This document shows, piece after piece, positions 9,743 through 48,785 of a stretch of 64,000 nucleotides of DNA. The notes below the pieces were generated by a model. It did no database searches. It was given only the letters and a program-made list of their open reading frames with translations, and was not told where the DNA came from. Origin of the DNA: Bigelowiella natans CCMP2755. Taxonomy: Eukaryota; Protista; Cercozoa. Each line of letters starts with the position of its first letter. The first letter of the stretch is position 1. The stretch is from NCBI GenBank assembly GCA_000320545.1, contig ADNK01000855.1:20658-84657 (forward strand). Reading direction: 5' to 3'. The position numbers were made by a program, and so were the translations under genes.

Positions 9743-10447
9743 GGTGTGAATAATAATGGATGATGTAGTTTCGAATTCGGTTTCTGGTTTGATGATGCGC
9801 TGTGCGAATTGTACAGAACAAAATATCTTCACACAGAGAAAAACAGCTAGCTGTGGGAAAATTACGACAACAGACAGGGGCTATTTCACAACGTACGACC
9901 AAATAATTTGCAACATAAAAGACAACATTTTGTTGTACAGATCGTGCTCATGGGAAAATAGACCTGTGTTCGCTTCACTCGTGAGACTGCATAAAATAGG
10001 TTGTCGCTATCACAAAAGTACAGGTCATGTCTGATTTCAATGGATTTCTCGAAGCGTTCCGGAAAAAAGGAGGAGAGATAGCTGGATAGCAGGAGACCAC
10101 GAAAAAGCCAAAACCCACCTGCTGGTTTTTTTGGCCGAACTCTCCGTACACCCAAAACCCCCCGAAATCGAAGAGGGGCTTTCCAGAACGAAAACTAAGG
10201 AGAAGTTGATATTGCGACATGATATTAAAGCTGTTTTTTGTCCAAAAGACTGGGCTCGGCAAAGAGAGTGCCGTGTACGCACATAGAGACCCGAACCAAG
10301 AATGTCAGAATGCGTCTTCATATATTTCCAGTCGTAGTAATAATTTCTGCTCTATTTACGAAGATCTCGGGGATTCCGAGACTACAACTCTAAACCTTGA
10401 GTTAGTCCCCGGTCAGCATTCCGTCGGATTTCCGGATGTATAAATAA

Positions 10448-26370: not shown

Positions 26371-27166
26371 CTCGTTCAAGAAAACTTTCTAACCTTTTTC
26401 AAAATAAAATCCGGCAAATCGAAATTGCCACCTCCCACAAAGCCTTTCATTTTCTGCAACAAGCCCTCTTCCTTCCGTGAAGTTTTCCTCCGTTTGGATC
26501 GATGATGCGCCTCCATCGGAATGAAGCCGAAGTTGGAGGGAAGCTATTCCCCTCGCATTTAGAAATTGCAGATTTTGTTGGACATTTCATAGTTGCGACA
26601 TCATAATAAGCTCAGATTTAGATTCCGTACAAAACAAAGGGAATATTTCCCATTCTGGACCCACTCGGACGTCGGATGCATAAAATCAGCTCCTGCCAGT
26701 TTCACGCTTGAATTGTCTTATGCGACAATATAACATGAGTGACTCACAGGCAGATTCACGAAGGTTTTAAGCGTTTCTAAGGGTTGATGCGATTTCAACA
26801 CCTGACAATTGTATAGTTTCAAAGTACGACAGACGAGTTCCATTGTCGTAGTTCAGGAATTAAATGGTTTTCACTTCTGCGGAAACTTCCCAAAATAGAC
26901 CCTCCTCTGCGCTTCCCTGAACGAACATTCTCGGACGGTGGTAAGTGAACCAAGGGGAGAAGAAGGGAAATAGAGATAATGGGATCATGGCATCGGCAGC
27001 AATCTGATATGTGTGTTCAAACTTATGAGGCAGAAAAAAGTATTTTTTCGAGCGATTAAACTAATGGATTGATGCGATGTAGGTGATTGGGAGATATTTG
27101 AGGTCAAAGACGAAACTGCTTCTCCAACTTTATTCGGAAAAATAAGCTTTAACGTAACGAGGTAGT

Positions 27167-28767
27167 ATGGACGATCAGCTAAGACGCGCTATTGAAGCAA
27201 GTAAACAAACTGCACAGCAGGAAAAGCAGTCAAGGCAAAGAGATACTCTCTTGCAGCAGGCACTTGCTGCCTCAAAGGCTGAGGAGGAGAGGCGGAAAGC
27301 CGAAATCGCCCGGCAAGCACAAGCACGCGAAAGAAAGGTCACCGGTAACGCGCAAATGAGCGAGGAAGAGCAGATGCGGCTCGCCATTGAGGCTTCGAAG
27401 AAGGAAGAAGAACGCCGGAAGGCTTTGTCCAATAACGATGAGGCACTCAAGCTTGCAATTGAGAATTCCAAAAAGACAGCCAAGGAAGAAGAAGATCGAC
27501 GCCGACAGGAGGAACAAGAACTTAACTTCGCTCTGCAGCTCTCGGCGGCATTGTATCGAGCTAGCAACGTTAGCCGTCAGCTCCACGACCAAAAGGGGCC
27601 AGTTCAAGGACATATTCAGAAGGAATACGCTGTCCCTGTTGTTCCTGGGACGCTCGACGTCAATCTTATTGAGGCACAGGGGCTGCCCAACATGAAGACA
27701 GGAATGAACCGCATGAAACCCTACGTAGTGCTCCGTGTCATGTCCATCGCGCCAGTGGGTATTCTCAATCTTACGATCCATAAGGCCGAGGGATTGCGAA
27801 AAATACAGATGATCGGCCAGCAAGATCCCTACGCCATCGTCACGCTCGATGGGCGGCGGAAAGCCACTACTAAGGTCCACTATGATTCGGGTCGCACACC
27901 GGTATGGGAGGAGAAGAAAACTGTGACGCTCACGGGCAAGGAGAAGTCGGGCTCCATCGAGATCCAGATCTGGAACAAGAACATGATGTCAGACGAGCGC
28001 ATTGGGTATTAGTACATCATCAAATTTGAGTAGGCTATGTAGTATAAAGCTGGAGTTGTATTGAGTTACTTTGTAGCGATTCGGCTGGTTGGTCGTTCGT
28101 TGTATGAATGCCCCAGTCTCTCATCTTTCCTTCTTGATTAATGGCTATGCAGATACGCGTACCTCGACGTGGCCGATGTCTTGTCCCCCAGTAAGAAGAA
28201 GTGGCTAAGGGTAAATCGGAAGAAGGGAAAGCATCACAGCAGCAGCCTCGATGGCAAAGTTTGCGTGTCCTGGGATTTCCAGGCGCACTGTGCACCCTCC
28301 TTCAAACCCCTGAAGGTTGTAAACGAATTCACGTGCGAAGAGAGAGGAGGGAGGAACAGGCAGCACCGTGAATATTTTTAACTACTGCACTGAATGAAAA
28401 AAGGGAATGCCAGAACATTTGGTCCTACCTTCTACCACTATTGAATTATATCAACCCGTACCAAAATGCACATAATAATAATAGGTGCTCGAATCTAAGA
28501 CAGGATACGTCGGGGGCCCAGATCCCAAGTGGGAGAATACCCTGACGGTCAAGGACATGGTGTCCAATTGCTACGTGCAGGCGACCCTCCGCAACAAGAA
28601 GACGTTCGGTACCGACACGATTCTGGCCATCTCCAACGTTATCTCCGTGCAGGGCGCTATTCACCAGAACTTCTTCACAAAGGGAAAGAACACTTGGTAT
28701 TTAGCAGTAGTAGCAGCAGTAGTAGTCATGGAATATCTTACACAGTAGAAGTAGTAGTAGTAGTAGT

Positions 28768-28798
<31 letters not shown>

Positions 28799-29304
28799 GC
28801 GGTAGTAGTAGATCTTGAAAGGTGTAGTCGGGGTGGAGATAGGTAGCGGAGAGTATTAGGGCGGAAGCAGTGTCGTCTTTTCATTCAAAACGACACACCA
28901 TCTATCCGATCATCCTTTTCAATTTCCTTTCTAACCGAGCCACCTTCGAGACATGTCAAAAGCTCGTACGCATCTTCTACCTTTTTGCCCTGAGTCAAAA
29001 CCCGAAACTACGCGGCCCAATTGTCGTCCATCCACGTAGGTACCCGCTGACACCCTCCAACGCCACCCGCTCCAAGTGCACCAACAACAACGCAGGCAAG
29101 ATTAAGCTCGAAATCAAATTCCGAGACGAAGACCACCCTGATGGCATTGTGCCTGAGGAAATTGAGCCACAGATTCCAGACGTTGATGTCATCGAAGGCG
29201 CCCAGGTGGTAAGCTCTGGTCCAGTTGTGGAAGCAACGGTCGTCAATGCCCACGCTCAAGTAGGATCAGGCGATGTCTTGGCTGCAGAAGTCCAACCGTT
29301 TTAG
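27167..29304 (+). CDS. Protein with five ubiquitin-interacting motifs (UIM) followed by two C2 domains, one nested in the other; 4 exons
   Basis: UIMs: DDQLRRAIEAS, DTLLQQALAAS, EEQMRLAIEAS, DEALKLAIENS, EQELNFALQLS. C2 strands: GTLDVNLIEAQGL..KPYVVLRV; GILNLTIHKAEGL..DPYAIVTL..TPVW..IEIQIWNKNMMSDERIG; GGPDPKWENTLTV..GKIKLEIKF. Confidence 0.88.
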
Positions 29305-33448: not shown

Positions 33449-33982
33449 ATCCTGCGCCATTTCCTCGCATCGCAGAAATGACAATGCAAGCTGTTTGTGA
33501 CCTGCGATCCCCAACATGCATTGTCTTTGGAACAATGCATTGGCCCCCTCATCGCATGTCGCATGCTCGCGGAGCCACAGGCGACGGTGGTGCGGTCGCC
33601 ATGATCACTAGACGCTAGCAACAAAATGCATTGCATTGTGATTGTTACTGCAATAAATGATTCATTGCATAGCATGCGCTAGGGATGCACTTGTACGATG
33701 CCTTGCATGAGCTGTTGTGCGGCTGGCAAACATCCGCTTGGCGAACGTTACGTTAACGTGCCGCATGTTCCATGTGCTCATCGCTCTACTCTGCGCTTAT
33801 TATTTCAATCAATGCGCGACGTAGCTTGCTAACTGATACGTGTACAACATGTAATATGGCTGCCGGTAACATCATTAAAAAAGAATTGAAGATCTTGGAG
33901 AATCCGTTCCTTTCAAAAGTGGGAAACCTTCAAATTCGTTCAATACCATCTCTTCAAGAAAATTCTCTTTAGAGTTAGGAGA

Positions 33983-34499
33983 TTAGAAGTTCTCTTTGTG
34001 AAGGATGAACCTGAAGATATATACAATATATCACAGAGGAACATTCGACTCGAAACAAGATGACTAGTTTGAGGAGGAAACAAAGGGAAGGGCAAGGGAA
34101 TTGATGACGCCTACTTGGTTCCTTTTGCTTCCTGACTACTGTGCTTGGCGCACATCTTTTTCAAATCAGCAGCAATGTATGGATTCCCGCAGAACATCAC
34201 TCCGACCTGTGGCGGCGGATTATATCAGATAAGACGAGGTGAAATTCATAGTTACCCTTTCGTGTGTGTGTGTGTGTGTGTCATCTGTTCTTTCATAATT
34301 TGATACGTTCTCATTCCGATACATCTTTAACATCTCCTCGAAACGTATGTCCCAATTGGGCCGGCCATGATGAACATGTATGTCGCCCAATGTCTTCGAC
34401 TCCTTGCTGGGGAACAGCAGCGCCTGAAGTGCAACGACTGAACACTCAGCAAAAATATGAAAATACTCGTACACATTTTACACACACACACACACACGT

Positions 34500-34578
<79 letters not shown>

Positions 34579-35431
34579 TTATTATGTATATTTCAAATGC
34601 TTGTGTACATGCTTGTAATCCCCATCACGAGCGAGTCATCATTCACCTTGTAGAGGTCTGCTTTGGAGAAGTTTGCCCGTTCCATATCTACTTGCGACTC
34701 AGGTGCTGGAATTCTGCCGTAAGCAAAAAAAATAATAACGATAGAGAGTATTATGAAGGAAGAACAAAAACGACTATTGAAGGAAGGATCAATGTGAGAA
34801 GGGCTTTAAAGGGTGATACTGACTGACCCCCAAAATGTGTCATCTTTTTCTTCCTCAGTAAGCGACTTGTACGCCTTCTCCTCTGTCAGGTCCTTTGGCA
34901 CCTGTTAAGGCAATTTTAGTTTGCATTGAATATCGTCGACGTATGTTAACATCCACATACACACACACTCACACACACGCGCGCGCGCACACACACGCAC
35001 ACGCACAGAGACTTACCGACGTCACGTATATGTGGAAGTTGAAGCTTTTCCCTCTCATTGCTTCCTTCGATTTCACCTATGCGAAATGTAGCGAAGTTAT
35101 CATCAGTACGATCAGTCTTCTCCGTTCTTGGCCTCTTCGTAATACACTACCTTCATGTTGATGACACAGTCCTGCACTTCCTTGAGTCGCGATACGAACC
35201 AGCGGTACGCCTCTACGTCCCGATGTGAGACGACCCACGCAAAGTTAGCGTGCGAAGGATAGCTTTTGCCTACGGTGAACTTCCATCTGCAGAGGAAAGA
35301 AAAATCTTTATTTTAGACGTTTATCTTTTACATATTCCCAATATCTCCGATTGAGTGTACGAAGCGCATATTTTTTTTGTATCACAAAAATACTTAATGT
35401 CCCAAATACAACAAATGCAACAAATCACTAT

Positions 35432-35488
<57 letters not shown>

Positions 35489-35787
35489 GGGGTGGGGGGG
35501 GGGGGGGGGAAGGGAAAAGGGGGGAAAGCAACACAACTCTCTTCTCCATTTATTATGTTAGGCCTGGTTGTGGACCTACCTGTGGAACACAACACTCTGC
35601 ACGCATGCGGCCACTGGCGTCAGTCCAATTCCTGCACCCGCAACCTGAGGAAAAGCACAAAGCGAAAAAGAGGAGGGAAGCGGAAGGGAGGTAGAGAATG
35701 TAAGTGTGAGAATAGGCAACTGAGAAGGCAGAAAAGAAAGAAAAAGAGAAACCAACAAAGGCGAAGGTAGGGCACTCCAACAATACA

Positions 35788-35827
<40 letters not shown>

Positions 35828-38340
35828 CATGTTGAGTACCAAGACGTGTTCATATTCGGTCATGTGCTGAGTGGGTGCAGAATGAGGCCCGTCCACCAAA
35901 AATAGCTGCTTGCCATCCGGTCCTTGTGTACGTCCTTTATGTACATTTGCGAAGAAAAGGAGGAATACAAGGTCAATGAAAGTACGATGACAGAGGCGCT
36001 ACACAGATAACATAATATCCTCAGCGAGAGGGGTAGCTGTGTATTTCAGCCGATGTCAGCATTAGTACCTGGACTAATTTGACCGTCACTTCCTCTTGAT
36101 GTCAACGAAAAGGATTTCACGCCAGGGGGGGCAATGGAGAGGCAGTAATCAGCCACAGACTACAGAGAAGAGGAGGAACGGGAAGGGGGGCATGGGAAGA
36201 ATAAGATATGAATATGCACGCGCACACTGTGTCGCATACGCATTTCACCCTTGGCCCCGTGTACTCATGGAGAACACAACGGATATCTCCGCAGCCTCCA
36301 TGTACTGGTCTCTTTCACGTTTTATATAACTATTTCTTAGTCCACTTTTTCTCGCTCCCTCACGCTACAGGTGGCTGCATGCATCAGCGCAATATCGCCC
36401 AATCAAAACTATTCTTGCTTCCGTTCATACCTGAGTCCAGCTTCCCTCTCCCTGCGTTTGAATATGAACCTAGAAATTCAATCATGGAGGGGAGGGGGCC
36501 AGAGAGAAGAAAGCGAAGGAACAACACCTCAGATTTTACATGGACAAGATGCAATGCAGCTTCTGTGGTCTCGTTGCCGACGTTTCTCTCCCAAACGAAG
36601 TTCTATCTATGTGAGGATCGACTGATTGGAAATCCTGCTTCATTGCTTCTCCCACTGTTACTGCTACAACTAGTAGTAATGGTGATAGCACTACTACCCC
36701 CGACACCACGACCACTGCACTGAACCTCTCCCATTCACGTACGCACACATAAAAAAATACAGGAGCTCTTTTAGCCGAATCGATTGCTATGCTACTCGCT
36801 GACCGTCCACGTCGGCTTGTGCGGCGGCGAGGATATGGTGAAGGGGTGCCACTCGTACTTTTTCACAGAAGGACAGCAAAGGAACACGTATTGTCCTTCC
36901 CGGTAGCCTGGCAATGGACGATTTTACAACAAGGCAGCGAGGGCATTGAATAAGGAGCAGAGATGATGACAGCTCTTAGATATGCACAGAGGTGATTATG
37001 AACGCGGCGTGACATCTTCATTGGACTCCTAGAGGTGTACATTCTGCTTCCATCGATATCGCTCTTTCTTCCCTTAAACTGTTTAACCTTTTCCTCCCAC
37101 CCTCATTTCCTCTTCCGACCGCATACATCCATTCAAGTTGACGGGGGGGGAGAAGAGAAAGAGGACAAGAAAATAAGGCATTGGTGAGGAACGCACCAGC
37201 GGCTCCAAATGCGCTGTCCTTGTCGAATTCAAAGGAGATGAGCCGTGGCTTCATTGCCATCATTGACATCACACGGACTTCATTCTGAGACCTACGAAAC
37301 CACAGAGGGGTGCGTATAGCTCAGTTACTTGATATGGTACAACACGTAATCTAGTGCCCCCACGTATGTGTACGTTCATGTGTGTGTGTGTGTGTGTGTG
37401 TGTGTGGAGGTGTATCGCTGCGGTGTTAGTGCGCTCTTGCAACAAGGTTCGAAGAACCTCAGAATCCTATAAATGCGCTCCATTATGTACATAGATCCCG
37501 GTAGTAACAAGTACTTCCAAAAGTTAGGGTTCCAACCTGGGTAAACAATTATTAAATTGCTACTATCCAATCTGGATGAACAACTATTAAAATGCTACTT
37601 ACTATCCATCCACCTCCTCTCCCTCCCCCCACACACGCACATACACATACACACATATGAATAACCGAAGATAAGATAAAATATCATGTATCATGTAGAG
37701 GTTCTTTTGGAACAATTTACGAGAGTGCCGGTGTATTTGCAGGCTGCATCTAGCATCCAGAAAACGAGCCATTTTTATTTGAAAGCTCACAGTGCATTGG
37801 CGAAGAGAAATGGATACCTCCTTTTCCGTGTAGAAGACAAATGGCGAAATAGGCTATGAAGAGATGGTGGCTGTACCTAATGAGTTCAAGGGAGGGGCGG
37901 CTGAGTGAGCAACGTTAAAGGGGTTGTTGACAAGGAGGGGGGGGGGGAGAGAGGGATAGGGCAATAGTTTGGAAAGGCAGGAAGGACCAGAACACTTCGA
38001 AGTTGCTGCGTTTCACCATGTCAGAGCCCCCAGAGTAGATAAAGACCTGTCACCCCGCGCAGTAGTAACGGTAGCAGGGGAAACAACATCTTTCATAATT
38101 TCGATCCAAAATTATGGAAATGTCACAACAGAAACACACGTGTCATGCAGGACTAGTTGGCTATGCTTTTTAGTAATGCCGCAAGAGATCGAAATCATCG
38201 ATGGTGAAAAGCAACCATGATGATTAACAGCATCATTCCAGAGACGAATGGCCAGTGCCCGAACCTGCAACATACCAAAGTGATTCGCAGCACGAAAAAC
38301 TACAATAGCGCCGCTACGCCTATGAGCACACTCGATTCAA

Positions 38341-38372
<32 letters not shown>

Positions 38373-38379
38373 CCTAAAC

Positions 38380-38420
<41 letters not shown>

Positions 38421-38882
38421 TTACTATTATATGGGTGTGTGCGTGTGTATGTTTGTACTTGTCAACTGTTTGTTCTGGCTTCGCTGAGTAGTTGATAAAG
38501 TGCATAAGCGTGTGGCCGATAACAGCGAAAAACGACAGCCTGAAAATGGGGAAACGCAGACAAGAGCAAAATCAATATAGAACACACACAGAACACACAC
38601 TGCAAACAAATGAAGATAAAATACATATTCATCATGTCAGTGGAAAGATAATGCCATAGTATAGTTTTCGATACATATGACCATACTTTGCCAGTTGCTT
38701 GTGCAGCATGTGGTTCTTGTCGATAGGAATAAAACTGAAGATCGTGCCTTATCGATTCGCCAGCAAGGTCACAGGTAAAAAACAGAATGCATGCAGAACA
38801 TCAACACAATGAAAACTACATCCGCACACGCATCATATGAACAAGTTTTACATTTGGAGTATGTACGCGTCTATCATGCGTT

Positions 38883-38916
<34 letters not shown>

Positions 38917-39086
38917 CGCGCATGTGAGAACGTGAGAACACTTGCTTACGGAGGGGATTTGGCGAGACAGCTTTGGTCCAGTGTTGCAAGATTGTACAAA
39001 TAGCGGAGTAATGTGCGGCATACCTAATGTGTGTGGTAAAGCACCTCCCAATCACAAACTATTTCTCAGATACAAAAGGACGAACA

Positions 39087-39122
<36 letters not shown>

Positions 39123-40140
39123 TATTTGTGTGTACTATTGTGCATAGCACTTGTGTAACTTGTTTCAACATTTGGTAGATGGTTGGGAAGTGTCGACGAG
39201 GTTTCAACATGATGACTGCTGCCTCTCAGTGTCGGGCTGCCACAAGGTCATAGCCTTGTTGACTTCAAATCGGTCAGTGCTATTTCCTCCCTCAATTCTC
39301 AAATCTTCCTCTATGTGTGGAGAGAGTACCGGCAGCAGGATCAAGGAGCTGTTTATGTCTATCATGCACCTATGTGCATACATAACCTCAACGACGTGAA
39401 CGGGAGAAGAACAGCATGTGGAAGACAATCACTCAAAATGGCGGAACGGATCAGAGCGAAGGCGCAGTCGATTTTCTTCGTCAATAATGACAAAAGGACA
39501 TGATCGCTCGATTGTTGCTGCGTATGAGTTCAACCCGAATCCTTTGGCATAGGGTGCCCATCCGCTCAGCTTCTTGTCATCGTCCATCTCATCCACAGCC
39601 TGAAAATATCGTTTGCATCATTTTGTGCGTGCGTGCGTGCGCGTGTGTGAGTGTGTGTCTGTGTGTGTTCATATAGCACAGGCTGCAAATTCCATGCAGA
39701 CCTTGGTCCAGATGACAACAGTGACAATGAAAGCGATGAGATTTGCAAGGAGGTAAACGCAGAAAAAGACGAAGACGCGCCCTTTTGCCACTTGTTTCTT
39801 GAAGTAAATTTTCCACTGCTCAACGAATGAAGGTGGATCTGATATTTCGCGAAAAAGTATGATCAGACTACAGGCTCCGCCACACACATATACAAGGAGA
39901 GAGAGAAAGAGAGAGAGAGGAGAGGAGAACACACACACACACACACACAAATACACACACAGTAACTAAGTGAGCGGAAACACTATCCTCTTCTAACCCC
40001 CTTCCCCTTTCGCTCCTTATACTGATCGTCGTATTGATTGATTGAATGATTAATGCACCTCCTTTCCTTGCCCTGGGCTTCTTGAATTTCTCCCCGAGAT
40101 AGAAGCTGCACACATTGCATGCACATATACTTAAGATTAT

Positions 40141-40182
<42 letters not shown>

Positions 40183-40522
40183 ATGTGTGCGCGCGCGCGC
40201 GTGTGTGTGTGGGTGCGTGTAGGTGCATAGTTAAGTGTATATTAAGGAGAAGCACTTCTAAACATAATTCATCATCACCCCAGAGCGTCGAAGAATCCAG
40301 CGAAAAGGAGCGAAAATGCAACTGTGATCGTAGCGAAAGAAGGGAGGAAGAAGATCCCGCTGGCAAACTGAATAGCGAAAGCAATGCAGATGTAGCGACC
40401 AGGATTAAAGCTTAGATATTGACAAATCAGGTCAGGTCATATTCGTGTGAAGACAGAAAGGAAGCCAAATGTTCGCGGCCACGCCCTTATGTGAGTGAAT
40501 TTGCAAGGGGAATGGCCATTCA

Positions 40523-40575
<53 letters not shown>

Positions 40576-41115
40576 GGAAGTAGCTCGAACCCATATAGCG
40601 CCCCGCGCCGGGAAGGACTCCAGGAGCGGTGCACCTGACACACGCAGTATGCATCCGTAAGCCTGCTGACATCCCAAAACCTTCCTTCTTCCCAACAAAT
40701 TAAGCATGCCCACCTTTCCTCGAGGTTTCGACGTAGTATAGACCCGGGCCATAAAGGAATGCGAAAACCTAAAACGGAGAGACTTGCTGTAACAAATGTA
40801 GATATATACAACTATCATGCCCTTTTAGGCGCTACGCATTCATACATGCGACATCCGCGATTTCGTATAAATGTGCGAGGCACAGATATTAGCTCGCTTA
40901 TTATTGTATTTTGGGAAATCAATGGAGGATCGAGTGACGTCAGTTCTAAAAATAAAGCTCAAACAAGCCGCTAAAATGTTTACGTTGTTTTATAATCCTA
41001 CCCCAGCTGTGATTTCATTTTCAGGGCTGATAAGTCCTCTTCCCTCTCCCCCGTACACCATGGCTGATGTTGGTTGTTCATGAATTGGCAAGTATATATT
41101 GGAGTGAGAGTGTGC

Positions 41116-41157
<42 letters not shown>

Positions 41158-42709
41158 TGATGTGTCATTTTAGATGATGTATTTGTGAAATATTGTAAAT
41201 GTGACTACCTGACAATCCCAGAACAACGAGGAATATTGATATGTAGTATGTAATCTGCGCAAAGATGGGGGGATGTGGGGGAAAGATTGTTGCATCAGGA
41301 ATAAGGAACTTTTTGTTTAGATTTAATTAAAATTTGATAATTAAAAAATTGATATTAATGTCAAAAAAATGTTAAAATGTGTTTTTGTAATATCATAGTT
41401 TTTATCAAGTTTTTCCAAACTTGAAAAAAAATTGGACATTTCTCCTCGTTAGATAGATTAGTATATTTATGACAGAATGATGATTATCTTTTCCTTTCAT
41501 TCCCCTCTTCTCCTCCTCTCACCATAACGTGTGCCCACATGCGGAACGAGGTTTGCTCCTTCTTCTTCTTCTGAGTAGCCTCAGGCTTGAATTCTCTTCT
41601 TTCAGACTTCGGCATCGACAGCTTCACGTCCTTCAACTTCGTTTCATCGCTCGGTGCTATAGTACGACACGACGATACCAGGATGGACGTAAAAAAGTGG
41701 ATTTACATCATAGGGGTGGGGGGGGGGAGAGGGTCTTTCGAGACGACAACATAAATGATTGATTTCCATTGTGCCTATGTATATATTATACGTGCGTGCG
41801 TGTTTGCGTGGTTATATGTGTGTTGTATGACCGCCTCCCCTAGTGCTGCTCGTCAACAGGTTCGTATTTGAGGAAGCAACCAATGATGCCCTTGACTGGT
41901 CTGTGAGAGGACATGATTTTTTATTATATCCCAAATCCCCTCAACATTTTCATGAATGAAATAAACAAGATTTTTATTGCCCAAGCCATTTATTTGTGAT
42001 TACAACATCGACGGCACACGCGCGTAGAAGCAGAGGATAGCAGGCAAACAACACGTACCACCCAACGCGTCAGTATCGAAAATTGCTGCCGATTTAGGCG
42101 AGGATGCCCTCTTCGTCTCCTCTTCATTCTTGTTCTCGTTCATAAGAGGCGCTGAACTGCCGATGTCCTTGGGCTTCGAAATCTCGGAGGTTGGTGGCGA
42201 GCTCGATGATCCAGGAGTCTCGATTTCTTTCACGTAATTGTATGGGAAAAGCCTGCATTTTCGTGTTTGAGAACACGACACGAAACAGAATTAGATAGGC
42301 TTCTTTTCTAAAGAGTTAGGGAGTTCGATCGTTGCTCGTTCACAGGAAAAAGGATCGTACCCGTCTTTCGAAGGATCGTTTTGGAGCCGGCCCTGCCACC
42401 AGCCGCTGATTAATATATCACGTGATGGTTCAATCAATAAACAGAGGGGGGATAGTCGCTAAGATATAACCTGTCATCCTTTTGAATTATCTCTATGATG
42501 TCACCGACCATTAAGGATAAGTGGCCTGAAAAATACCATTCAAAACGGAATTTTTATCGGCGGGGGGGCGAACAATAAAAACATTTCCGACAGCAACGAT
42601 TGATGCCCCGATGGAAAAATAGCAAAAATCGATACCATATTGGCTGCTTACCTTCATCGACCGCCTCATATTTAAATTGGGCCTTGCAGAGGCCGACATG
42701 TTCCGACAT
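33983..42709 (-). CDS. NADPH oxidase fusion protein: SH3 - linker - p22phox-like (cytochrome b558 alpha) domain - gp91phox-type NOX core; more than 25 exons
   Basis: SH3: [59 protein letters not shown]. Phase-consistent exons lead to [23 protein letters not shown]...[22 protein letters not shown]...[48 protein letters not shown] motifs: [91 protein letters not shown]. Further 5' exons up to ~43300 are possible. Confidence 0.85.
34503..34576. repeat. (AT)37 intronic microsatellite, one of dozens of SSRs ((CA)n, (GA)n, (AGT)n, (CAT)n, (GAG)n, (CAG)n) in this window's introns
   Basis: Read directly from the sequence; similar (AT)n tracts lie near 35790-35824 and 38382-38418. Confidence 0.95.
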
Positions 42710-44376
42710 GGCGACTTCCTGTTCAGGACACAGAGCCGGTGACGGTGGAGTTCAAGTTGTTTGCTGCCCTAAAAAAACCTGGCAAACACCACCACAGCAA
42801 TCAAAATTCACCATCTCTCCCCTCCCTCACATATGTTCTCGAATGAGCCTGTGGGGGGGCTCACACACACGCGCAACGAACCCACCCAAACGCGAATCAG
42901 CTGATGAGTTGACAGTGGCGAGGCGATGCGGATACCTGGGATACGTGTGGCGTCGACTCTAAATGCAGTTTGTTTTGGGATGACGCAAAGAGGAAAAGGA
43001 CTCTGTTTTCACTGTCGCCAATAAATAAAACGTCTTAGCTTGCCGTTTCTGTTGATAATTTGTTGGTGAACACGTCGCACCCCAACTATGCTCTACTGTC
43101 TTCATGGACTTCCAGATTCGACCATGGAAGAGAGGGACCAGCGTAGTCGAAGCTCTACGTCATGGGCCATCGCACGCATCATCCTTCCCCTCGAGGCCAA
43201 GGAATGCAGTGGTGTAGTCGTTTAGGCTCTTCGCCCTTGGAGAATTTTTCTTCGGAAGGGAGGTGATTCGTCGTTGTGATTGAAACCTGGCCAAAAAGCT
43301 CATTGTTGTTGTGTTGTGGATTTGACAGACGTCCTCGACGATTCTGTTTTGAAGAGCACAGAGAGGGAGAAATCTTACGTAATGCGTTCTCGGAGAGAGA
43401 TTATTTTCACACTGGTTGGTCCTAGCACACCACACTGAGAATGGAGATGAAGTTTTGCGACTGTAAAGATCAGACAGAATCAAAGATTGGCGAAGCGTTG
43501 CTTGCATTGTGATCCTGATACAGGAACTATTCGTTCTGGATCAATTTAAATATATATTCTAGAAGGGCGAAGAAAGAGCGTTGAAAAGGCATGTCCAAGT
43601 TTTTGTGCCAGCAAAATATTTCACAGCATGCAGCACGCACCATGCTAGCATGGCCTTCATGCACACACGTGGTCCGCCATGCACGTGCATGCGCATTGCA
43701 TAGGCCATTCTGTGCAGCTAGTCCACACGCATTGTGTAGAATTTATTCATACCGTTCGACTAGTCGTGATCTCAGTCTAGCAGTGCTTGTGCTAGTGTGG
43801 TACGTTGCTGCTATGTCACATCTGTGGACATTGCACAAACATTGTTCATTGTCGTTCTTGGTACTGTGAGTTATGCGTCGGCGCGGGTCGCATCTATACG
43901 CATTTAATATGCACGCGTAACAATTTATCACCATCTCGATGATTACATAAGAACCAATCAGCAGTGGTCTATCTAGCTATCTTTTGGTACGCGGAGACTC
44001 AGCATGCGCGTACACATTCTAGCTAGCTAGCAATACACTAATATAGCATGCATATCAAAGATATGCCTAAAAAGGTTGCATGGCTATCTAGCTATGTACA
44101 TTCACCTAGCTAGCTAGGCATGCGAGGCATAATACATGCATGCTAGCTATAGCATGTCTGATGTGGGCATGCTCTTGATGCTCTACGCATAGAGGTAGCA
44201 TATATATATATATATATATATATATACTCACGTTAGTTTTTTATATTCTTACTTCGCAAAGAACGCTCACGATGATAATATAGAATATAGTTACTATGAA
44301 GATTCTCGAACGATACGTTGCAGTTATCGTCAAAACTTGCTCTCCTGCGCTTGGTCGCTCTCTTGAATATGGCAAT

Positions 44377-45462
44377 TCAAGCAATGATATGCTTGAGGCT
44401 GTTCTCAATTGATTTCTGGTCGAGATCCTTCCCAATAAAGACGAATACGCTCTCTTTTTTTTCCCCCTCGGCCCATTCACTACCTTCCTCGATCTCCATT
44501 ATTTCGTGCACAGTGTGATAAACAAATTTGCTGTCACTCCCCGATGCGTACAGTAGTCCTTTCGATCGGTAAAGGTCCGCGCTTTTCTCCTGGTGGGGGC
44601 GGTGAAGTGATTAATAATAAATTTCAGCATACTAGCAATAACGTAGCACCACAGTTGAAAAGGCTATTTAGCTAGCGAGACTATTTACTACACCTGCAGT
44701 AGGTCGCGCATCCATTCTTGGAAGAGCTCCAAGTCCATCGGCGCCTTGATTCGTACGACGAAGGAACCTATCGACTCGTCATGGCTAGTTTGACGGTCTT
44801 CTAAGAAGTCAGACTGAATCTCCAATACGCGTTCCACCTGGAACGCGTTGATCTTCAAGAGATGCTTAGGATCCACCTTGCCTTAGAGGGGGGAGGGAAG
44901 GGAAAAGAAGGGGATAAGACGTGAAGAGGCTGCACATAAGGCATTGTGCCTTCTCGGTGGTTGTCGTCGGTCGTCATTGTTTTATTTTTCTTTCACTCAT
45001 TTTGACGTTGCAATTTGCAGATTTTTTTAAAGCCTGAAAACTGATGCTGTTCCTCTGACATCTCCCCTCTCTCACCTCTACTTATTACAACAGCGACTAA
45101 TTAATACCAGCGCTTACTACTAGCACGAATACCTCTTACGGTCTCGATCATCTTTGTACTTTTATTGATTTTCCTGACCATATCCTTGACTTCCTTTATC
45201 TTGTCGGGGGTGCAGAGATCAACCTTATTCAGTAAAACCACGTCGGCAAAAGCAAGCTGCTGCCTAGACTCGTTCACAGCTCCGTCCTGCTTTTTCTCTT
45301 CGAGGTTTTGCAAGATGTGCTTGCAATCGCAAACCTGATGATATGAAACCCCACCATCTCATCGTCATTACGTTACGCATACACCAGTTGAAGAAGAACA
45401 CAGTGAACCATCGCTTGAGTCATATTTAATTCATGAAGGGTAAACCACACACACACACACAC

Positions 45463-45507
<45 letters not shown>

Positions 45508-47647
45508 TACAAAAGCGGGAAACATACTGTCCCCTTCTGTTATCCTCATAACCGATAAGAAAAGGGAAGAAGCATCGGTGTATTATTTGTGAAATCTCGA
45601 GGGATGATATATTGTTGTATTCCATCCCCTACCACTTCTAATCCTACTCTACTAGTAGTATTACTACTACCGTAACGATCCCGTCTAGTTTCGCGATTTC
45701 CGAGATTTCCTGATCCATATAGAATGTCTGCGCCACAGGTGTCGGGTCTGCCATCCCCGTCGTCTCGACCAGAATACCGTCGAGGCCTTTATATCTAGGA
45801 ACAACAAAAATAGGGGAAGCCGGGGGGGAGGGGGGGGTTAGGATTGTCAGAGGAGAATAAACAAACACGAACATACAAAACGCACACAAAAATCACACCC
45901 TTCGCCCGCTGCTGCTTCTCCTTCCAACTCATTCCCTGATTTATTGATTCACTCTACCAAACTCACTTGTCGCAGAGCTTAATGATTGCTTGAATAAGGT
46001 CCCCTCTGACTGTGCAGCAGACGCAGCCATTCGACGCCTCGACAATCACCTCTTCAGGATTCTCCTTCTGCCCCCCTGCTACCAGCTTTCCGTCGATACT
46101 TTCTGAACCGAATTCATTCTCGATGACTGCAAGCTTCAGCCCATGCTTTGAAGATAAAATGTGGTTGACTAGCGTGGTTTTTCCGCTTCCTAAAAAGCCG
46201 GTGATGATTGTCACAGGCAGCCGCTTCGCATCACGCTCGGAGATCTTCTTCGAGTGTTCCACCTGGAGAAAGGTTTGAGGATGGGGAATGGCTATGATGA
46301 TGATAATGATGATGATGATGATGATGATAAATGTTAATGAGAACATAAATTACCTGCTCCTTAATGATTTCATAAGTTTCCTGCCACATATCGTTGCCAG
46401 GGTTGATTTCCAGCGCTCGTCCTACGTGCTTCGAAGCTTCCTTGTAGGCACCGAACTCCATCAGGGAGGATCCACGAACCCACAAAGTCGACGCATAGTT
46501 ATTCATTTCCGCCTGCATGCATAAACAAGTTTGACGCAATAAGCAAGCCCAATATATAAGATTTAAATGAGGTGAATCGAAGACTTATCCCAGCTATTTG
46601 AATTTGTATTACTTTGCTCGGTTTCTTGGTCTTAAACTGACGTTCAAATAGCTTGAGCGCACGGCCTGCATCTTGACTCGCATCAGAGAAGTTATTGAGC
46701 TTAAAAAATGTGATAGCTCGGTAATAGAGGATCAGCCACGTTGCGCCGCTGTAAAGAAGAAAACATAAATCATATGTCAACTACTCTTGTCGTCTACCAG
46801 GTTAGCGGCGAAATGCGAATGAATACCACCCCACACCTGATTTGTTCCAGTGCTTGTGCCGCACAATTAGGATCCTTTCGGATGTCTTCCTGGGAGGGAA
46901 AGCCCATGTTCTCCACGGCCTTCGTAAATATTCTCTGAGCATCGGAATTGCGTCCCATGTTGAAAAACTCTTGGCCTTGCTTAAACTGCTCATTCGCCTT
47001 CGGTATGTTCGCTTTAACTTTCCAAACATGGTGTTCATGTCCATGGCCGTCACCATGGCCGTGACCGTGGTGGCTATGTCCATGTCCTTCCTCCTTGCAA
47101 TCCTTGGTTTTTCAAGAAAATCGACGACAAGTGCTTTAGATAATAATAAGCTAGATGGTGAGGAGAGAAAGGAGAAGCACATGAAAGTTTATAGAGCTCA
47201 ATTCAAAGCACCAAGCCTTTCTCTGATGCGATGTACCTTTTTGTGGCAGTCGTCTTCTCCATGCCCATGGCCATCTTTATGCTTGTCTCCATGACCGTGT
47301 CCCTCCCCGTGTCCATGACCCTCACCATCCTTATTCTTATCTCCATGACCATGTCCTTCCCCTTCCTTGTGACCATCCCCGTGGCCATGGCCATCTCCAT
47401 GCTTATCTCCATGACCATGTCCCTCCCCTTCCTTGTGGCCATCCCCGTGTCCATGGCCTTTACTGTCTTTGTGGTTATCCCCGTGACCGTGACTCTCGGC
47501 CTCAATCTTACTATCACCAATTTCGCTTTTTGTGCGCTTCTCGGTCTTTTGAGCTTGCATTCCGATTCCTGCTTCCTCTCTGTCAATAGGTTGAAAAGAA
47601 GGAGATGATGGATTGCTACAACACACGATCCCAAGAATGCCGAGCAA
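44377..47647 (-). CDS. COG0523/CobW-family (ZNG1-like) metal-chaperone GTPase with an N-terminal His/Gly-rich region and TPR-like repeats
   Basis: LPVTIITGFLGSGKTTLVNHIL, LAVIENEFG, SNGCVCCTVRGDL (CXCC), ILVETTGMADP, QLAFADVVLLNKVDL, DLYRSKGLL, ESVFVFIGKDLD. N-terminal (GHGHGD/E)n repeats and TPR-like exons (FKQGQEFFNMGRNSDAQRIFTKA; YYRAITFFKLNNFSDASQDAGRAL; RGSSLMEFGAYKEASKHVGRALEINP). Exact start codon is uncertain. Confidence 0.92.
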
Positions 47648-48785
47648 CGAAACTTTGAGTACTCGCTTTTCGATTTCGAAAATTAGAGAAAGTTAGATTA
47701 TGCACAATATACCCAGATCTTTTGCCCATCCTATGGTCTAGTTGCTCGTGTTGTGCTCGCGCCGAAGAGGTGGGAGTATGCTCCGTAGAAAGATGAGGAG
47801 GTGCTCTTCCTGTGTTCTACCGCGTCGTAAATATTTTCATCGAAATCCAGATGGCAACTGTTTTTCTCCTTACGACAATAAGTATTACCCCTCTAAGGCA
47901 GATAAATACATAAATCGTTGTTCGATTTACTATTTCTGAAACCCGCCTTATACTTGCCAAGCTTCGCATCGGAAATTTGGTCCTTTTCAGAATTTTAAGT
48001 ATCTTTTTTATTATAAAGACAACAAAAAGTACAAGACGTAGATGCACATTACTTCTTTGTTGGATCGAAGTAAGTTAATACATAAAAAGTCACGCCGTGA
48101 AAAAATGCGATGTCCAAAACGATCCAGGGTTCTCTATCTGCGACATCATTGATTTCGATTTCCTACTAGCAGGATTTCTGTCGATCGGGGAAGCTCGTGG
48201 GGAAGTAAGACAAGCGACGTTTGACTAGGGCAGTTGATATTCATTGTAACCACATTTGCTGGGGCACGCAATACCTCAACTTCATTTCGGTTGCACACTA
48301 TTCAGTTGTTCTCGGTTCATAATATGCACCAAAACTGTACGAAAATTGTGCAGAGTGTCCAACAGAACCGCCCGATCAGGACCCACGCAACGCTGGGCCT
48401 CGGACTGGCTCATGGGCGCACTGCAAGCGTCTGCGTCCATCTTTCGATCCTCTTCTCGCTCTAGCTAACTCCGTAACGGCAGGCGTCTACTGCATCAATG
48501 CTACGCCGACTCGCATGGGCCCATATCTTCATAAATGCGATCGTCTTACTGGTAGTACATACCGAGCGTGTGTGTGCAGCAGCCAGATTCCAGACATTTA
48601 CATTTTCTACGTAACTATGTGCTTATGAAACATTACCCCACAGATCCGAGCAGGGCCATTTGTTCCCTCCAACCTCCAATCGTTGGTTCGGCGACGAGGA
48701 GGTGCGCACGGGCGCCGAGACAGGTGAAGAAAAATATATCAATTATCCTGAACGCACGCATCCTACATATCCATTACCATTGCAG

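Follow-up and report, generated by a model that had tools for sequence, protein, structure and literature searches.

The 64,000-nucleotide (nt) window analysed here comes from the rhizarian alga Bigelowiella natans CCMP2755 (NCBI GenBank assembly GCA_000320545.1, contig ADNK01000855.1, positions 20,658 to 84,657 of the forward strand). On its minus strand, between positions 42709 and 33983 of the window, we rebuilt one intron-rich gene for an NADPH oxidase (NOX), comprising 35 exons and 887 codons, with GT-AG borders throughout. The gene runs from an ATG at 42709 to a TAA at 33983-33985, which are exactly the limits given in an initial annotation made from the letters of the DNA, and a stop codon in frame with this ATG (42752-42754) sits upstream inside the transcribed exon 1. 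Along the 887-residue product the modules follow in the order SH3 domain, linker, four-helix membrane block, short basic linker and NOX core. Exons for the SH3 domain, for the membrane block in the middle and for the NOX core are spliced into one and the same mRNA, whose single open frame of 887 codons, in its RNA version, has zero stops between the three modules. The features of the gene are listed below, with residues numbered along the spliced product and with the basis of each assignment in brackets.

42780-42886, minus strand: intron in the 5' untranslated region (an RNA contig jumps from 42779 to 42887)
42710-42779, minus strand: 5' untranslated part of exon 1 (RNA contigs reach 42779 and resume at 42887)
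42225-42709, minus strand: SH3 domain, exons 1-4, residues 1-62, the domain itself at about 5-62 (RNA joints, translation and a weak Pfam SH3_1 match)
42652-42709, 42471-42525, 42361-42405 and the start of 42059-42252, minus strand: the SH3 exons (RNA joints)
41547-42224, minus strand: low-complexity linker rich in Ser, Lys, Glu and Thr, residues 63-177 (RNA joints and translation)
Rest of exon 4, exon 5 (41832-41900) and most of exon 6 (41523-41656), minus strand: the linker exons
40059-41546, minus strand: four-helix membrane block and basic stretch, residues about 178-299 (contig-gap lengths, bin depths and hydropathy)
End of exon 6 (FRMWAHVM) and exons 7-12 (41209-41254, 41002-41063, 40714-40768, 40591-40634, 40279-40367 and 40059-40105), minus strand: the block exons
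37458-39838, minus strand: NOX ferric-reductase transmembrane domain, exons 13-22, residues about 300-534 (RNA joints and translation)
36069-37291, minus strand: flavin adenine dinucleotide (FAD)-binding subdomain, exons 23-26 (Pfam FAD_binding_8 and PDB matches)
37197-37291, 36804-36907 (carrying HPFT), 36431-36469 and 36069-36159, minus strand: the FAD exons
33983-35934, minus strand: NADPH-binding subdomain, exons 27-35, through the TAA at 33983-33985 (GT-AG borders and frame)

Exon sizes are mostly 39-137 nt, and the single exon of 194 nt (exon 4) codes for nothing but the last part of the SH3 domain and low-complexity linker. In the three-frame translation of the window, the SH3-like, hydrophobic and NOX-like pieces are dispersed across many short open stretches. 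Frame checks, hydropathy, motif positions and a BLAST comparison with the window were carried out on the exons joined by coordinate. Exons 1-24 are backed by the joints of spliced RNA contigs and exons 25-35 were derived from GT-AG borders, frame and NOX motifs. It must be noted that intron 27 (35645-35839, 195 nt), with its (TA)n run, contains no stop and preserves the frame, and a gene predictor could easily retain it.

RNA data over positions 36801-42800 consisted of three RNA-like Logan assemblies from two studies (runs X1, X2 and X3) and one raw RNA run. Two spliced contigs, record 1 of X1 (1870 nt) and record 7 of X2 (1814 nt), each span 42779 to 36802, so that single contigs link SH3 exon 1 to the FAD exon unbroken; X3 gave the same joints in shorter contigs. 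All of the 15 contig joints listed resolve to GT-AG on the minus strand. The contig gaps without listed joints measure exactly 207 nt and 47 nt, the former being filled exactly by exons 7-10 (46, 62, 55 and 44 nt) and the latter by exon 12, while the frame stays open. In addition, a loose end in X3, where 41067 continues at 41213, confirmed the junction of exons 7 and 8. The initial annotation had considered that transcripts might terminate between the SH3, p22phox-like and NOX blocks, and no such break was found in the X1 and X2 contigs, which run from SH3 exon 1 to the FAD exon.

At a contig depth of 68.6, the exon model predicted the depth correctly in nearly every 200-base bin (16.1 vs. 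16.1 observed, 30.5 vs. 30.5, and 15.8 vs. 15.8). The fraction of the 31-mers of positions 33900-42800 that lie inside the 35 exons is 0.199, against 0.13 for exons 1-24 alone, and the fraction of sampled 31-mers held by six runs is 0.20, which agrees with all 35 exons being present in RNA. Apart from this, an (ACG)n microsatellite in intron 10 (40523-40580) reached a depth of 1884 in X3, compared with about 10 elsewhere, and the repeat is evidently common to abundant transcripts from other loci.

Therefore, the architecture is that of a single polypeptide rather than of three neighbouring genes, and the fusion is real at transcript level. Read-through between neighbouring genes, or chimeric assembly, could also generate long contigs of this kind, in which case the SH3/four-helix protein and the NOX would be made separately. 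A Logan contig is no proof of a single molecule, the one run with raw RNA reads yielded 5 reads, and the protein library searched holds no annotated protein with exon 13. However, identical exon-exon joints were present in three runs from two studies, every junction is open in frame, with neither a stop that would end an upstream gene nor an intergenic stretch, and depth along the contig is uniform. We regard two separate proteins as very improbable.

The genome and the RNA differ at one site. At the end of exon 16 (38950-38953, minus strand) the genome reads CCCC and the contigs of X1, X2 and X3 read CCC, three letters (GGA) standing between 38747 and 38954 in each of the three. The first haem histidine is in frame only in the RNA version, and the genome copy as given contains a +1 frameshift, which is a point against an intact oxidase. 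In this regard, the phase-consistent chain of GT-AG exons that the initial annotation had traced holds for the 35-exon RNA version, whereas the genome read literally breaks phase at exon 16. The same literal reading, out of frame past this exon, would fit a decaying pseudogene. Nevertheless, the in-frame version was found in all RNA contigs, no damage is seen in the remaining 34 exons, and a homopolymer such as this is where assembly errors typically occur; decay of the locus is thus hardly to be credited. The simplest reading is that the extra C is probably a homopolymer error of the assembly, and a strain allele is possible.

The protein is securely a member of the NOX family. The spliced product has the haem-binding histidine pairs H420/H434 and H491/H504, with spacings of 14 and 13. 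In NOX2 the corresponding pairs are H101/H115 and H209/H222, on helices 3 and 5, with the same spacings. The motifs HPFT (586), GAGIGLTP (678), GRPNW (829) and HKENF (883) follow, and the protein ends in FILHKENF. The four haem histidines and the HPFT, GIGxTP, GRPNW and HKENF motifs announced in the initial annotation are thus all in place in the spliced product, and its statement that EF-hands are absent also held, since a regular-expression search of this product found no EF-hand-like loop. Pfam searches were run with stop-free pieces and exact exons at E values up to 10. The FAD exon alone matched FAD_binding_8 (E = 1.4e-7, 32 bits against a cut-off of 22) and, among PDB entries, csNOX5 (1e-8), NOX5 (1.5e-7), NOX2 (1.7e-7) and DUOX1 (7e-5). 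In the NADPH-binding subdomain the motifs are present and the Pfam match is weak (NAD_binding_6, E = 0.11 on exon 34); against PDB, exon 29 gave no matches and exon 33 a single non-significant one to the unrelated RanBP2 (E = 6.1). Pfam matches to HD-ZIP_N, mucin and Atrophin fall on translations of intron-derived microsatellites and were dismissed.

The SH3 domain is recognised by its motifs, which follow in order within residues 10-60 (AQFKYEA, GDIIEII, GWWQG and FPYNYV). As the domain is split over four exons and was scored exon by exon, Pfam SH3_1 on exon 2 alone gave E = 0.0056 and 16.7 bits, below the cut-off of 22.9. The best PDB matches of exon 2 (query 42437-42553, minus strand) were SH3 domains at non-significant E values of 0.45-1.6; the SH3 of p47phox heads this list (E = 0.45, likewise non-significant), which we mention only as a curiosity. 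The linker that joins the SH3 domain to the membrane block is about 115 residues long (63-177) and rich in Ser, Lys, Glu and Thr, and a basic linker, running for about 30 residues from helix 4, joins the block to NOX helix 1.

Hydropathy analysis of the block (residues about 178-288) revealed four hydrophobic segments, at about 184-204, 218-234, 251-265 and 266-284, the hairpin of helices 3 and 4 being nearly loop-less. Given that the SH3 domain and the NOX N-terminus are both cytosolic, an even number of helices is required between them, and four fits; both ends of the block should therefore be cytosolic. The four-helix topology with a loop-less hairpin of helices 3 and 4 is the only one that keeps the SH3 domain and the NOX N-terminus in the cytosol. 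An origin of the block by internal duplication of NOX helices was rejected, the block not being a copy of these helices, nor was a second copy of the NOX gene found within the window. The tetraspanin (Pls1) and DUOXA types of oxidase partner were also rejected on loop sizes, given the loop-less hairpin.

The initial annotation had likened the block to p22phox on the basis of the landmarks MWAH (180), AGVF (220), VETSRK (234), ARG (249), ATI (266) and LGEKF (287), all of which lie in the spliced product at the expected places. In human p22phox, cryo-electron microscopy highlighted a buried polar network formed by N11, E53, R90, H94 and Y121 and an interface with the oxidase including M8, W9, I20 and I108 (Liu et al., 2022, PMC9711523). 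Aligned by eye, the human protein and the block correspond as follows.

p22phox W6-A7-M8-W9-A10-N11: F178-R-M180-W181-A182-H183
p22phox I20: I192
p22phox A45-G-V-F48: A220-G-V-F223
p22phox E53: E235, with basic residues next
p22phox R90: R250
p22phox A106-T-I108: A266-T-I268
p22phox G128-E129: G288-E289

In this by-eye alignment the interface residues find equivalents in M180, W181, I192 and I268. The polar network would be represented by H183, E235, R250, W254 and D281, with four of the five positions polar (two identical, two polar substitutions) and one lost, and the aspartate D281 in the middle of helix 4 is hard to explain otherwise. Homology of the middle block with p22phox is plausible but unproven, and the motifs incline us modestly towards this view.

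Several observations weigh against it. The human p22phox sequence used was checked only at the 19 residues named by Liu et al. (2022, PMC9711523), all of which agree, and in the alignment by eye the best ungapped stretch (p22phox 90-131 against 250-291) has 9 identities in 42 positions. H94 is replaced by W254. The amphipathic helix between M2 and M3 (ICL1) of p22phox is missing, the loop having about 14 residues against about 33, and no proline-rich tail follows the block, the chain running straight into NOX helix 1. The sole PxxP of the protein, at residue 594, lies inside the FAD domain, and the ligand of the SH3 domain was not identified. No block exon or stop-free piece matched Pfam, including PF05038 (Cytochrom_B558a), and a PDB search of the block pieces gave no p22phox match, a wrong-frame exon 11 query being discounted; with pieces of 14-29 residues both searches have almost no power. 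Neither did the helix 3-4 exon give a usable match in the ESM Atlas. As to the fusion itself, its support is at gene and RNA level, and relatives with the same architecture of SH3, four helices and NOX were not found in the library search with exon 13. In that search, HMMER with exon 13 (45 residues, linker and NOX helix 1) returned 0 matches in 1.84 billion representatives, including no B. natans model. Public protein models thus appear to miss at least exon 13, which is unsurprising for a gene made of exons of 39-137 nt.

Alternatively, the fusion may be real while the four helices form an N-terminal membrane extension that is specific to the lineage and has no kinship with p22phox, serving for instance in targeting or oligomerisation. 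On this view the shared motifs would be a coincidence between hydrophobic helices, in keeping with an identity of only about 13-21% in ungapped stretches, with the absence of PF05038 and PDB matches in the exon-wise searches, with the loss of H94 and of the ICL1 helix, and with the finding of p22phox in opisthokonts only (Massari et al., 2022, PMC9421330). However, the matches are collinear and consistently spaced, and they fall on the residues highlighted by cryo-electron microscopy, namely the M8/W9 interface and, in the polar network, E53, R90 and the position of Y121 (PMC9711523). Moreover, the topology and the tight hairpin of helices 3 and 4 fit p22phox and no other known NOX partner, and a p22-type partner is exactly what would be expected in a NOX fusion. 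An unrelated extension is possible but, in our judgement, rather doubtful. Of the fusion of SH3, p22phox-like and NOX parts proposed in the initial annotation, then, the single-chain architecture stands, carried by the RNA and the one open frame, whereas homology of the middle part to p22phox is a hypothesis, the nearly powerless exon-wise Pfam and PDB searches having given no match.

No paper on a Bigelowiella NADPH oxidase or on a fusion of p22phox and NOX was found in the literature. The origin of p22phox has been called unknown, and the survey concerned places the SH3 of Naegleria inside the NADPH domain and lists neither an N-terminal SH3 nor a p22 fusion (Zhang et al., 2013, PMC3591440). 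It has also been reported that p22phox, p47phox and p67phox are restricted to opisthokonts (Massari et al., 2022, PMC9421330), and a p22phox candidate in Dictyostelium has been doubted (Kawahara et al., 2007, PMC2121648). Among the matches listed for a query from the exon 11 region there was a metagenome locus (10001-10078) on a prokaryote-like contig with 55% guanine plus cytosine; what it matches, by chance, is the stretch of the query that derives from an intron, and it is not a relative.

Two further loci of the window deserve mention. A gene on the plus strand (27158-29300) encodes a protein with UIM and C2 domains. The translation of the long exon of this gene (27158-28009) shows 100% identity to a 492-residue MMETSP/IMG transcript protein, the 90% cluster of this protein contains EukProt EP00466_Bigelowiella_natans_P005090 (JGI Bigna1 87039), which identifies the source of the DNA as B. 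natans, and a transcript contig of 1808 nt is on record. On the minus strand, at 44380-47692, there are exons of a CobW/COG0523-like GTPase with the motifs GFLGSGKTTL and CVCC, and upstream of them, on the same strand, TPR-like and long (GHGHGD)n His/Gly-rich open stretches, all of which possibly form one metal-chaperone gene.

Taken together, the data lead us to favour, by a small measure, an 887-residue membrane flavocytochrome that is encoded by one nuclear B. natans gene and has a counterpart of p22phox/NoxD covalently attached. A cytosolic N-terminal SH3 domain and a flexible linker of about 115 residues precede a compact four-helix bundle, this bundle being the putative attached counterpart, and about 30 basic residues after it lead into a complete, EF-hand-free NADPH oxidase with six helices, two haems, and FAD and NADPH sites. 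The haem domain may be stabilised by bundle helices 1 and 4 packing onto NOX helices 3-5. In the NOX2 complex helices 1 and 4 of p22phox pack on NOX helices 3-5 (PMC9711523), and by analogy the linker of about 30 residues between helix 4 and NOX helix 1 could plausibly allow packing of this type in cis. The enzyme would produce superoxide or H2O2 at the outer face from cytosolic NADPH. The proline-rich C-terminal tail of p22phox normally recruits the SH3 domains of p47phox. In the B. natans protein the fusion would replace this tail, and with the tail gone the docking logic would be inverted, the SH3 domain being borne by the membrane enzyme. This domain might recruit a proline-rich or polybasic cytosolic activator or, alternatively, fold back onto the polybasic linker of the enzyme itself as an autoinhibitory latch. 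The self-contained, self-regulated oxidase suggested in the initial annotation is an inference of this kind, and our regulatory account is speculation.

That the four helices are truly homologous to p22phox and joined in cis to the oxidase of a rhizarian alga, and hence a natural Rosetta-stone fusion, is a tentative proposition to which we would give slightly less than even credence. If true, the partnership of NOX and p22phox and SH3-based docking would predate the split of Amorphea and Diaphoretickes, which would contradict the confinement of p22phox to opisthokonts, and structural and mechanistic studies of a p22-dependent oxidase would gain a model that is a single chain and needs no partner. 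The gene would push the partner subunit towards the eukaryotic root or else document the convergent recruitment of a four-helix stabiliser. It would also give independent genetic evidence on which modules belong together and provide a one-gene oxidase expressible without p22phox, EROS or cytosolic factors. With a block unrelated to p22phox, too, an N-terminal SH3 domain and four extra helices are absent from the 17 NOX domain layouts catalogued in 2013, and such a layout is apparently missing from the protein library searched.

In animals, SH3 docking, the p22phox partner and the NADPH oxidase are provided by separate proteins. Human NOX2-p22phox (cytochrome b558; PDB 8GZ3 and 7U8G) resembles the B. 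natans protein in its six-helix, two-haem core with an FAD/NADPH domain, in a small four-helix partner with both ends cytosolic, in several interface and polar-network positions that agree by eye with the block, and in having an SH3 domain as part of the assembly logic. It differs in that partner and enzyme are two chains and not one, in the proline-rich tail and ICL1 helix of p22phox, both of which the block lacks, and in carrying the SH3 domain on p47phox instead of on the membrane protein. In addition, the B. natans protein belongs to a rhizarian alga, has short NOX loops and ends in HKENF, a C-terminus resembling the NOX5/Rboh type. NOX5 and csNOX5 (PDB 5O0X and 8U7Y), to which the FAD exon gave its best matches in the exon-level PDB search, are likewise partner-independent single chains, but NOX5 has N-terminal EF-hands where the B. 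natans protein has an SH3 domain and four helices.

The NOX homologues of Naegleria gruberi (architecture M17; Zhang et al., 2013, PMC3591440) also have an SH3 domain of their own, implying a proline-rich partner. In them, however, it is inserted inside the C-terminal NADPH-binding domain and no p22-like module was reported (PMC3591440), whereas in B. natans the SH3 domain is N-terminal and followed by the four-helix block. The fungal NoxA-NoxD and Dictyostelium NoxA-CybA pairs have very divergent four-helix partners of the p22 type which are missed or disputed by plain sequence searches (Kawahara, 2007, PMC2121648; Lacaze, 2015, via PMC9421330). NoxD and CybA are separate polypeptides in Amorphea, in contrast to the fused module found here in Rhizaria. 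Finally, the hairpin of helices 3 and 4 is almost without a loop in p22phox as it is in the block, a trait in which tetraspanin Pls1 and DUOXA differ from both.

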